From Pavona decussata (taxonomy: Eukaryota), in the NCBI GenBank assembly GCA_977016875.1, contig CDRNST010000273.1, positions 5,208,001 to 5,272,000 of the forward strand: a stretch of DNA of 64,000 nucleotides, read 5' to 3'. Shown here in pieces: positions 18,849-26,009 of this stretch; position 1 is the stretch's first letter; each line of letters opens with the position of its first letter. Position numbers and translations under genes: made by a program. The notes under the pieces were generated by a model. That model was not told where the DNA came from and made no database searches. It saw only the letters and a list, made by a program, of their open reading frames with translations.

Positions 18849-20501
18849 CCGTGGTCGAGTTTACTGAAGACCTTACAGTCTCTGAACTCAGTGACAAAAT
18901 CTTCTGTGATTGGATCTTGGACATTCTGTGTGCAGAGCATTGATTTGTTTAGGAGGCGAAGATCAAGGCTGACTCTGATGTCCTTAGGGTTTTGTGGTTT
19001 TGGCTGCACTACGATCGGTGAGCACCAGGTGATTGCTTCATGGTCTGGAACTTTTTCCATGATGTCGCTTTTGACGAACTCCTCAATTCTGTTTTGTAGA
19101 GGTTCAATGAGATGATACCTGACTCGTCTAGTTTTCTGGGCGATTGGTACTGCATCTTCTTTCATAAGCAAGCGAATTTGAATGTCTTGGCCATCTCGAG
19201 TTGCCTTGCCGACTCCTTGGAAGAGATTCTTGTGGTGATGCAGGATTTTCTCTAGCTCGGAGTTCTCATTTTCGACTTTTGTTCACGGCTTTGTTTGGCT
19301 CTTTTAATCCTCCAGTTGCATCAATCTTTAGCATGCGAAGCTCGTCTAATCTTGGTCTTCTGAGTAAAGGTAAAGAGTCAATCTTTCCTTTGATCACAAC
19401 AATAGTCTTTGTCCTTTCTCGTGTCTGGTTTTCAATTTGCACTGTACATTCTCCTTTCATTGGCAGGTCGCAGTTGAGTGCTTTTAGCTTGATGTCTGAT
19501 TCTTGAAGTTCCATTTCCGGAGTTTGTGTTTGCAGTTTTCAGAACTGAAATTCGTCCATAATGTTCGTGTCTGCGCTGGTATTTGGTTCTATTGTGGTTT
19601 CGATGCCGTTTATCAGGATTTTACAGGTCTTCTGGATGCCTTGGCTCGCTTTGTGAATCTGCAGATGGTGGATGAAACACTCATCGCTCAATGTGTTGCT
19701 GAAATCGGACTTCCGGTCAATTTCTTCGTTTCACAACACTTGGCGGACTTTCCCATAGCAATTGCTCGGTCTTCGGTGACTTCTTTGGCCTTGGTGATCG
19801 CGTCTTGTTTGCGGATCTTTTTGATGGCGAAATTTGTCGTATTGTTGATGAGGGCTTTTCCTTCGCTGAGGATTTGCGCTGTGTGGTTTACTTCTGCAGA
19901 CACTTGCGTAGTGGTTTCGCTTTCCGTATGCGGTGCAGAGAGCGCCGAATGCCGGGCATTTTTGCGTGTGTGTACGCCTACATCGACCACATGGTCTTGA
20001 ATTTGCGAGTTCCCCAATGCGTTGAATTTCTTTTTCTTCGTTAGAAATCTTCTTTTCCATTTCGGTTGCTTCGTGATTAGCTTCATCGAGGATCTCTTGA
20101 AGTGTCCAAGTTTGGCGAATGGCTTTAACTCAAATTCTTCTGTTGCGCATTGTTTTGATCAGATGATCTCAAATGGCGTCATTTTCATCGGGATACTCGC
20201 ATTTCTTAGCGATTTCTCGTACGGGAGCGTAATATTTAGCGAGTGATTCGTCGCTGGCTCGCAGAAGATTGCCAAGTTGGAATCTTGCATAATCTTTGTT
20301 TTTCTTTGGTAGAAAGTGGTGGCCCAGCTTTCGAATGAAATTCGTGTATTCATCTCTGCCTTCCCTTGGCATCTCTGGTAATGATTCTTCTAGATCGGCG
20401 ATGTCGCGGCCACCGTAGATGATGAAGCCATCCTTTTGTAGCTCAGGGTCGTTAATGCCAAAGAAGCGAAATTGTCGTTCTATGTCCTTCTTCCATTTGG
20501 C
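18849..20501 (-). pseudogene. Gypsy A gag (C-part), protease and RT N-part
   Basis: Knuckle-like CGRC..H..CPAFG..C..GKRNHYASVC; protease DTSADTNIMDE; RT WCSPIVVQPKP..IRVSLDLR..FSKLD. Confidence 0.85.
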
Positions 20502-20580
20502 ATTAGAAAAGATGGGCCTGGGCGCGAAAGATGGCGGACGTGTTTTCTGAAGCTCCGTCTTCTTCTCGATAAAAACCAGG

Positions 20581-21486
20581 ATGCCTACAGAGGCGGATAA
20601 CGAAATAAACCATGAAGAGGCTGATAAATCGAACAAGTATCCTGTAAGGAAAAGTGAATCCCGAAGAAAGAAAAGAATGCGAGAACGAGGATCTCAGACT
20701 GATGACGAAGCCCTTAGTGATGGCGAGCAACACGAGCATGGCTGCGCGATGTGCAACACGAAGCTGAACGACATACAGTGCAAGCTCGATAAGTTGATAT
20801 CTGTGCTACCTGAAATACAAAACCTGAAGATCCAAGTAGCAACGCTCGAAAAGGAAAACGAAGAGCTTAAGGAGAGTCTGGAGTTAACACAAGCAGAAGT
20901 TGAAGGTTTGAAGGAGCAAGCCAGCGTAACCGCGGCGACACTAAAAGCAACAACCGCCAAGATAGTCAAACTAGAAGAGCTAGAGCGCAGGGTTGTCAAA
21001 CAAGAATGCTTCAACAGAAGAAATAACATCAAATTCTTCGGCATCAGCGACAATGAGCAGGAATCCCCAGAAGACACAGAGGCAGTTCTGAGAAACTTTT
21101 TTGACAAAGAAATGAAATTCTCAAAGAAGCACCTTGATGAAATTGAATTCGAGAGAGTCCACAGAATTCCAACTCGGGCACGCGAAGAAAAACCAAATCA
21201 GCACCCAAGACTGATAATTGCCAAGGTATCTTTCTTCAAAGATAAGCAACAAATCAAATTACACATCAAGCACCTACCAAGAGGAAAAAAGTTTGGTGTG
21301 GCTGATGACTTCCCGAAATAAGTAGATGAAATAAGAAAGGAGCTTTACCCGGTGCTGAAAAAGGCAAAGAGAGATCACAAAATGGCTTTCTTCAACGTCG
21401 AAAAGCTAATTCTTGACAAATCTGTTTACCGAGGACCCGAAACAAAAAACTTTACACTTTACGGTCGAATCATGGACAATAATTAA
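20581..21486 (+). pseudogene. LINE ORF1p (coiled coil + L1-type RRM/CTD), one premature stop at 21319-21321
   Basis: Heptad coiled coil, RRNNIKFFGI, ERVHRI, PRLIIAK, ADDFPK*. The frame continues VDEIRKELYPVLKKAK..KLILD to TAA at 21484-21486. Confidence 0.85.
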
Positions 21487-21735
21487 TTTGGTTAATCATT
21501 TAGTGCCTCTGTAGAGCAGTAGGAATGCTTACGTGAATCTCAGACAGGAGAATTCGCCCTAATTGCTGCAGGTATTTATGTTTCGTGTTGTATGTTGTAT
21601 TAGTTTGCATAAGTTTGTTGTTTTATCGCTCTAAACTGTCTCTCGCTAGCTCTAAATTCACATGCTCATCGCTCCAATTGTCCGCAATGAAATCTGTGAC
21701 TGGAAACTGCGTTTCATTTTACTTTTCATGTATGT

Positions 21736-24700: not shown

Positions 24701-25476
24701 AAGGTAAAACCTTGATGACTTTTTCAACCTTCATGCAGAAATACAACGTCAAGAGTAACTTTCTGCAGGATTATAGCCTTCTATCTGCAATACCACAGGA
24801 ATGGAAAACTATGCTAAAGCAGGAATGTCTTCCACCGTCAACTGAATACGTACCACTTGCAATCGAAAAAATCACATGCAAAACAATTTACAATACTTTA
24901 CTCAATCACCAGCACTTCCCTCCTCCAACTGCGGAGAGAAGACTCATTGAACGCGGTTTTTTCTTTCAAGAAAGACAAAAAATCTACTTACTTCCTTTTA
25001 GTGTCACAAATGAGGTAAAATTATCCATGTTTCAATATAAAATAGTTCATAATATCCTGTATACAAACAAAATTCTGTACAAGATGAGAAAGAAACAGCG
25101 ACCCGATTGTCCTTATTGCCATGATATTGATCAGACACCACTCCATTTATTTGTGGAATGTCCAATTGCTAAATCCTTTTGGAATAAATTTACAAAGTGG
25201 TTCAACGCTACATGTAGAGGAAACATTGCATTAGAGCAAAACGAAATTATATATGGGGTTTTAAAATTCACATCGTCCGGTTTAACCCTAAATCACCTGA
25301 TCATAATTGGAAAATACTTTCTTTACATTAATGCAGTACAAGATGACAAAAGACCCCAGTTCACAGATTTTGTCCCCCTCGTTAACGAAAAAATTGAATT
25401 AGAAAAATACATTGCAATTATGACCAATAAACTACTCTCTTTTAATAAAAAATGGTCCAACTTTTTGAACAATTAA
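21736..25476 (+). CDS. LINE ORF2p (APE endonuclease, reverse transcriptase, C-terminal CCHC), 1246 aa, open
   Basis: SLNVRG, LQET, NIYAPN, RLDY, SDH (APE); KTPGSDG, WRPISLL, DFEKAFD, GVRQGCPLS, QYADD (RT); CPYC..HLFVEC. Confidence 0.95.
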   Translation: MVFNVLSLNVRGLNKMIKRRQIFRWLHQQKPDVVFLQETYSSAQNLKSWEAEWGGKMVGSHGTNHSRGVMILFKPKLDVNIEQIIYDKNGRYILVEALVEGDKFVFVNIYAPNDQTQQVQFLRGLSNSVLNKYARERMVLGGDLDCVMNEIDKRGGRSFEQKKTVIQEIKTLMRTHNLIDTWSCKHPNEQAFTWNNSSMKIYCRLDYLFISKSMESAIYNAKIVPNIFSDHSAITLSMSLESNETERGPGFWKFNNSLLTDKCYTEMIAKQLPKFISKYCSLSDKGLFWEMIKVEIRASTIVFAKNKAKQKRNEERDLLRRFNQLQEKIRSKFSEAMKAEMDRVKKELAKIASRKTRGAMTRSNAQWYEFGEKNNKYFYNLEKINHKKKHVTSLTKEDGNIVHEPKQILEEEERFFKEIYQTKNVCPESDNLEHLFDGLNTLKQEEADTCEGMLTLAECTSSLKQFKNNKTPGSDGFTIEFYRYFWNDIGQIMVDSFNYAFENGDMSISQKRGIISLIPKKDKKYLKNWRPISLLNNDYKIVTKALALRLEKVLPTIISPNQTGYVKGRYIGESIRIITDMMSFTKKKNIPGIAVFLDFEKAFDSIEWCYLQKCLEVFNFGPQLRQSITVLYNNTSSCVLNNGFATKHFNLSRGVRQGCPLSGILFVIGVEILSNAIKRSKEIEGIQIDPNKSKIQIKITQYADDTTVFVKDIQSAHKLFDLLQQFENCSGLRINQSKSEILWLGSLRQRKDSILNLKLSDEPVYVLGVYLSYDEELANKKNFFEKLPKLKKTLNIWSSRDISIYVRVNIVKTLAISKLTFICSVLDTPKGFTDKVNNIIFDYIWKYKNPKLKKMTIIKNKKEGGLNMLDFTLFDKALKIVWVKRLCANDKRPWKFIPLFLLSNVGGNLLFWCNYNIQYLPLDENLPKFYRDIISHWQQINSTNPKTKGDVLNQTIWNNQFIRVNKLSVFFPVWKKIGIENLSCLFDNEGKTLMTFSTFMQKYNVKSNFLQDYSLLSAIPQEWKTMLKQECLPPSTEYVPLAIEKITCKTIYNTLLNHQHFPPPTAERRLIERGFFFQERQKIYLLPFSVTNEVKLSMFQYKIVHNILYTNKILYKMRKKQRPDCPYCHDIDQTPLHLFVECPIAKSFWNKFTKWFNATCRGNIALEQNEIIYGVLKFTSSGLTLNHLIIIGKYFLYINAVQDDKRPQFTDFVPLVNEKIELEKYIAIMTNKLLSFNKKWSNFLNN

Positions 25477-25743
25477 TGTTTAGAGTCTAGCTGTGCAAAG
25501 GCATATACTATCCATTTGTAAGCAACTAAATTACATTCATTAATTTGTAAGTAATTGTATTGTATCGTAGTGTTAGTATTGTTCTTAGTAGCGTAGGTAT
25601 CGTTTCGTTTTGTTAGTAATATCGCATTGTAAGTAGTTTCGTATTTTTTTTTTAGCACTGTATTATAAAAAGTATCAACCTTAACAAGTAGTATTTCTTA
25701 ACAAGCGTGTTGTAATTTGTTTGAGCACTCAATAAAAAAAAAA

Positions 25744-26009
25744 AATGATTCTTCTAGATCGGCGATGTCGCAGCCACCGTAGATGATTGAGCCGTCCTTT
25801 TGTAGCTCAGGGTCGTTAATGCCAAAGAAGCGAAATTGTCGTTCTATGTCCTTCTTCCATTTGGCCCATCGGCTCGTGATATTTGTTGAGTTACGATCGA
25901 TGGCGAAGGGTGCAATATTGAGCTGTCTGTTCGTGACAGTGATGTGCTGCATTTGCTGTACTTGGGCTTGTGGAGCGCTGCTAGTGCTCGCTTCAGCCGG
26001 ATCAGTCAT
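25744..26009 (-). pseudogene. Gypsy A gag N-terminus (including the duplicated 122 bp)
   Basis: MTDPAEAS...RWAKWKKDIERQFRFFGI, just downstream of the PBS. Confidence 0.8.

Follow-up and report, generated by a model that had tools for sequence, protein, structure and literature searches.

The closest described counterparts of the insertion analyzed here are long interspersed nuclear elements (LINEs) that leave unusually long target-site duplications (TSDs). For human L1, TSDs of more than 100 bp make up less than 10% of events in HeLa cells and 57–91% of events in cells deficient in nucleotide excision repair (NER), and they have been attributed to a distal, unrelated nick (PMC5223499). The long-TSD human L1 insertions are traced to Gilbert 2002/2005 and Symer 2002 in the summaries given by later papers (PMC5223499, PMC2912911). 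In HeLa cells, extremely long TSDs went with 5'-truncated L1 copies (PMC2912911). A TSD of 126 bp has been reported for the rotifer element R9 (Gladyshev and Arkhipova 2009, as cited in PMC6895275), and very long duplications, of more than 100 bp, flank de novo insertions of Dualen LINEs in Chlamydomonas (PMC9977147). Here we describe a LINE of the coral Pavona decussata that lies inside a Ty3/Gypsy element and is bordered by two copies of a 122-bp segment of that host. The stretch of DNA analyzed (hereafter, the window) comprises 64,000 nucleotides, positions 5,208,001 to 5,272,000 of contig CDRNST010000273.1 in assembly GCA_977016875.1; coordinates below count from its first nucleotide. A prediction made earlier from the letters of the window alone (hereafter, the original prediction) had pointed to this duplication and had named R9, which has a restriction-like endonuclease (RLE), as a known exception to short TSDs. 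The R9 length of 126 bp is confirmed, but the comparison was incomplete, since human L1 (PMC5223499) and Dualen (PMC9977147) belong beside it.

Results

A 122-bp direct repeat adjoins both ends of an L1-like LINE

A repeat search of positions 19000–27500 identified a direct repeat of 122 nt at 20380–20501 and 25744–25865, with 118 of 122 positions identical (four mismatches, 97%). This was by far the longest repeat in the interval; all remaining repeat families were at most 32 nt long and at most 86% identical. The coordinates and mismatch count are those of the original prediction, which had placed 122 bp before the LINE 5' end and again after the poly(A); our analysis adds 11 filler bases at the 5' end. 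The first copy ends with ...CCATTTGGC at 20501, and the sequence from 20502 onward is not Gypsy sequence. The second copy begins inside the LINE-terminal A-run at 25734–25745, the final two As of which are equally assignable to the first two bases of the TSD. The features of the insertion are as follows, with C31 and C196 denoting two paralogues of the host element.

20380–20501, no strand assigned: probable 5' copy of the TSD, 122 bp of putative Gypsy gag, antisense to gag, with two derived changes relative to C31 and C196
20502–20512, plus strand: filler of 11 nt (ATTAGAAAAGA) at the 5' junction, neither Gypsy nor LINE, as judged from the start points of sister copies and its uniqueness
20513–25733, plus strand: LINE body (5' untranslated region, open reading frames ORF1 and ORF2, 3' untranslated region), 97–98% identical to copies on other contigs
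20581–21321, plus strand: ORF1, 246 aa, coiled-coil-like, with no curated family match
21736–25476, plus strand: ORF2, 1246 aa, open, with predicted apurinic/apyrimidinic (APE) endonuclease, reverse transcriptase and C-terminal zinc motif, from Pfam and human L1 ORF2p matches
25734–25743, plus strand: poly(A) tail, with the A-run continuing to 25745
25744–25865, no strand assigned: probable 3' copy of the TSD, with two derived changes relative to the paralogues

The ORF2 product matches the Pfam families Exo_endo_phos (residues 2–231) and RVT_1 (residues 518–769), placing an APE endonuclease at the N-terminus, ahead of a reverse transcriptase, and zf-RVT (residues 1092–1149) with 33.4 bits against a cut-off of 27.5. 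It is colinear with human L1 ORF2p over residues 4–878 (E = 5e-105). Based on these domains and the colinearity, the insert is assigned to the APE-type LINEs of the L1 superfamily, and a Pfam scan of ORF2 detected no RLE domain. Truncation of the LINE copies at many positions, their A-rich tails and their short, variable TSDs fit the habit of this superfamily. We did not encounter Tx1-type insertion into one specific target: the flanks of the 24 sister copies surveyed below are mutually unrelated. ORF1 gave only sub-threshold, coiled-coil-like Pfam matches and no relative in the PDB, and an atlas search bearing on L1 versus Tx1 membership returned only generic endonuclease–reverse transcriptase clusters. 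Taken together with the target-site comparisons below, the 122-bp repeat is very probably a TSD around an APE-type, L1-like LINE.

Uninterrupted copies of the target hold the segment once

The 602-Mb assembly contains only two other copies of the Gypsy region, C31 and C196, and neither carries the LINE. We aligned the locus to these uninterrupted copies, as the original prediction had proposed, and found the 122 bp to be single-copy in both, with the matches to the upstream and downstream flanks of the window overlapping by 122 bp. In a four-way alignment, C31 and C196 are continuous from ...CTCTGGT into AATGATTC... and from ...CCATTTGGC into CCATCGG.... The claim that the repeat is a TSD and not a 3' transduction is thereby upheld, as the repeat adjoins both ends of the LINE and is present once in the uninterrupted paralogues.

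An empty site was also found in run X1, a public metagenome from 2018. A contig of 411 nt from this run matches the window at 20172–20408 and 25773–25946, connecting 20408 straight to 25773. Over the span of this contig, we counted nine differences between X1 and the window, compared with 19 for C31 and 32 for C196, indicating that the X1 contig is nearer to this locus than is any paralogue in the assembly. On this sequence comparison, the contig plausibly represents the pre-insertion allele or an orthologue, and the LINE insertion may be polymorphic or lineage-specific. Run X16 contains an exact match to the Gypsy flank of the window at 20194–20316, together with a second variant that has a C at 20286; the observation is listed for window positions 20286 and 20357. 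The X16 variant points to either another allele or a closely related paralogue in the sample.

The duplication is of the same age as the insertion

We compared the divergence of the two repeat copies with that of the LINE itself. Counting only positions covered by at least three young sister copies, the LINE has private differences at 47 of 5230 positions (0.90%). This rate predicts ~2.2 changes over the 244 nt of both repeat copies; four were observed, which is within Poisson noise. Because the divergence of the repeat matches that of the LINE, we conclude that the duplication and the insertion are of the same age. When polarized against the paralogues, the four mismatches divide evenly, two derived changes falling in each copy; CpG transitions account for two of the four. 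Each repeat copy differs from C31 at five positions and from C196 at ten.

These observations bear on two other explanations for the repeat. The first is that a tandem 122-bp duplication already existed in the Gypsy element, and that the LINE inserted precisely where its two units meet, with no TSD of its own. Data from one genome are formally compatible with such an event, but it demands an exact coincidence between the LINE ends and the duplication joint, it is at odds with the single 122-bp segment in C31, C196 and the X1 contig, and the number of repeat mismatches fits the age of the LINE; we consider it highly improbable. The second is that two different LINE insertions, spaced 122 bp from each other and residing in separate Gypsy copies or haplotypes, were merged by ectopic recombination or by the assembler. 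The four differences between the repeat copies would be expected of such a chimera, and the junctions are known from the assembly alone. By contrast, only three copies of the Gypsy region exist in 602 Mb and the other two have no LINE, the junction between filler and LINE is unique in the genome, and the two repeat copies are equidistant from each paralogue, as expected of copies made from one source sequence. A chimeric origin therefore has very little to recommend it.

The 5' junction contains 11 filler bases

Full-length sister copies of the LINE start at positions 10–23 of the window element, indicating that the 11 nt at 20502–20512 are not LINE sequence. In the 602-Mb genome, the combination of filler and LINE 5' end is present a single time, and no other LINE 5' end was found to carry the filler. 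Likewise, there is no second copy of the filler in the window, and none with up to one mismatch in positions 19501–26500. On the strength of these searches, we treat the filler as untemplated. Sister copies also have 5' filler, of 5, 8 and 54 nt, so its presence is no peculiarity of the window insertion. The longest of these is in sister L015 (L015:35-88; G000:C4, about 387796–387849), where 54 nt of non-LINE sequence lie between a 14-bp TSD and the LINE 5' end; this stretch could be a 5' transduction or an unusually long filler. L015 also has an internal deletion (query positions 1432 to 3539).

The 5' junction is relevant to a further explanation, in which a source LINE resident in another Gypsy copy produced a read-through RNA that included Gypsy sequence, and the end of the resulting cDNA was resolved by homology, mimicking a TSD. 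The same end structure would be expected, and the 54 extra nucleotides at the 5' end of L015 are a point in its favor. However, the assembly contains no source copy that bears this filler or sits in a Gypsy element, and a LINE without evident target preference would have to hit a three-copy family twice, making such an origin most unlikely.

Sister copies have short target-site duplications

To place the window copy within its family, we surveyed the flanks of other genomic copies. Genome searches returned at least 53 matches to the LINE and ~60 candidates having its 3' end, with 42 matches listed by a further search based on that 3' end. We read both junctions of 24 sisters, roughly one half of the family. 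A constrained search found clear TSDs of 7–18 bp in 13–14 of the 24 and none longer than 21 bp, while mismatched-flank controls reached a maximum of 13 nt and mostly gave 5–9 nt. In unconstrained local alignments pairing the 400 nt before each sister with the 450 nt after it, no sister had a long repeat that adjoined the LINE ends. A long TSD is thus present in one of 25 copies, counting the window copy and the 24 sisters. TSD lengths in individual sisters are as follows.

L007: 15 bp
L013: 14–15 bp
L014: 13–14 bp
L015: 14 bp
L025: 13 bp
L010: 12 bp
L030: 10–12 bp
L050: 11–12 bp
L049: 15–18 bp
L004: 11 bp
L051: about 10 bp
L003: about 12 bp, inside a satellite
L002: 7 bp

L008 appeared at first to be a copy with no TSD, a classification that we rejected: L008 and L012 are the two halves of one copy, the true ends of which give a 14-bp TSD with one mismatch. 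Long repeats at L003 (306 nt), L008 (73 nt) and L025 (35 nt) were also rejected, being satellite, low-complexity or local repeats that are not flush with the LINE ends. In two further full-length copies, later insertions of ~2.5 kb and ~3.5 kb, one per copy, separate the two parts: L008 with L012 (G000:C86:2521652-2529381), and L006 with G000:C6:4353265-4354028. The transposable-element space around these split copies is heavily nested.

Most sister TSDs begin with A or AA, as does that of the window copy. This shared start indicates that the first nick was ordinary and that only the second-strand break was displaced. The original prediction had offered two accounts of the long duplication, a family that cuts the second strand ~120 bp away, near the length of a nucleosome wrap, and a single insertion that was resolved aberrantly. 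The survey that it proposed yielded short TSDs and no mode above 100 bp; the first account falls with this result, and the second stands. Regular second-strand cutting at a distance of ~120 bp, perhaps set by nucleosome spacing and as for R9 at 126 bp, is exemplified by the window copy alone and is the least probable of all the explanations considered, given that the clear TSDs in 13–14 of 24 sisters, drawn from ~60 candidates, are all short and that nothing comparable was found in the flanks of any of the 24.

The host is a Ty3/Gypsy element with nested insertions

The element that received the LINE, and its long terminal repeats (LTRs), are annotated as follows.

2349–26203, minus strand: Ty3/Gypsy host with 135-bp LTRs, a 5-bp TSD (GAAAC) and the putative gag ATG at 26009
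2349–2483 and 26069–26203, minus strand: host LTRs, 135 bp each, with TG..CA ends and five mismatches, flanked by GAAAC

Paralogues C31 and C196 encode reverse transcriptase, RNase H and integrase, in that order. From the LTR ends, the 5-bp TSD, this domain order and the colinearity of the paralogues with the window, we classify the host as a Ty3/Gypsy LTR retrotransposon. A weak, sub-threshold match to Retrotrans_gag, a CCHC-like motif and a position upstream of the reverse transcriptase tentatively label the flanks of the LINE as gag. The pieces of the host that align with C31 are 2349–4297, 4557–5366, 18853–20501 and 25744–26203, and the element carries three nested insertions: one of ~260 bp (4298–4556), one of ~13.5 kb (5367–18852), and the LINE. 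The divergence of the host LTRs (3.7%) is similar to that of the two TSD copies of the LINE (3.3%). It had been proposed that removing the LINE and one repeat copy restores gag; the frame is indeed open over the joint, but further stops remain and the two other insertions still break the element.

Discussion

In the window insertion the 3' junction is canonical, the cDNA is full length, the stagger measures 122 bp and the 5' joint holds a filler. We propose that this structure arose in a single event of target-primed reverse transcription, in which the two strands would have been broken 122 bp apart, compared with 7–18 bp for the family. The bottom strand would have been nicked in the usual form at ...GGT|AATGATT..., giving a TSD that starts with AA. 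The poly(A) would then have primed cDNA synthesis, with reverse transcription reaching the full 5' end. The top strand would have been opened 122 bp downstream, after ...CCATTTGGC, and the cDNA end joined at this distal break via the 11 untemplated filler bases. Fill-in of the 122-nt single strands on both sides would yield the duplication.

Within this scheme, we slightly favor an adventitious top-strand nick, or a repair or replication intermediate, as having replaced the normal nearby cut. An alternative source of the break, possible but less likely, is the element's own endonuclease cutting at the wrong position. Very unlikely, in our assessment, is a rare second mode of the family that opens the top strand roughly one nucleosome wrap away. 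Under such a mode, reverse transcription in the germ line could still run to completion and give a full-length copy, whereas the long TSDs in human cell assays are associated with truncation.

Several points weigh against reading the repeat as the product of one aberrant integration. The structure of both junctions is taken from the assembly alone; among the Logan contigs listed for the window, none bridges 20501/20502 or 25743/25744. The X1 contig with the empty site may represent one more paralogue instead of the allele. How the distal break arose is the conjectural part of the mechanism. Lastly, very long TSDs of human L1 in HeLa cells accompanied 5'-truncated insertions, whereas the coral copy is full length, a difference that we regard as minor.

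With these points weighed, we conclude that the window insertion is a one-off outlier with a long TSD, such as has been reported before for human L1. It provides a clean natural case, with a full-length insertion, a single-copy target, and matching ages for duplication and LINE, and it shows that the element does not dictate where the second strand is broken. It reveals neither a new integration mechanism nor a family with a programmed long stagger. There are also consequences for annotation: TSD finders that stop at 20–30 bp would label this insertion as lacking a TSD, and the duplicated 122 bp of putative gag might wrongly be taken to mean that the host element is rearranged.

Comparison with the known systems places the coral insertion nearest to sporadic human L1. 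Like the R9 element, it has a TSD of nearly the same length; however, R9 uses an RLE, inserts at one site in ribosomal DNA and makes a long TSD every time, whereas the coral LINE is of the APE type, has diverse targets and has a long TSD in one of 25 copies. Like Dualen, it is a LINE with a duplication far longer than usual, but Dualen encodes both an RLE and an APE endonuclease, in contrast to the ORF2 described here, and its long duplications are presented as a likely property of the element (PMC9977147). The human L1 cases come from cultured cells and are mostly truncated or from NER-deficient lines, whereas the coral copy is natural, full length and present in a genome assembly. In other respects the two agree: both involve an APE-type element with a canonical poly(A) end and a TSD of more than 100 bp that is in the minority among TSDs of 5–30 bp, and for both, a distal second-strand break has been offered as the explanation.

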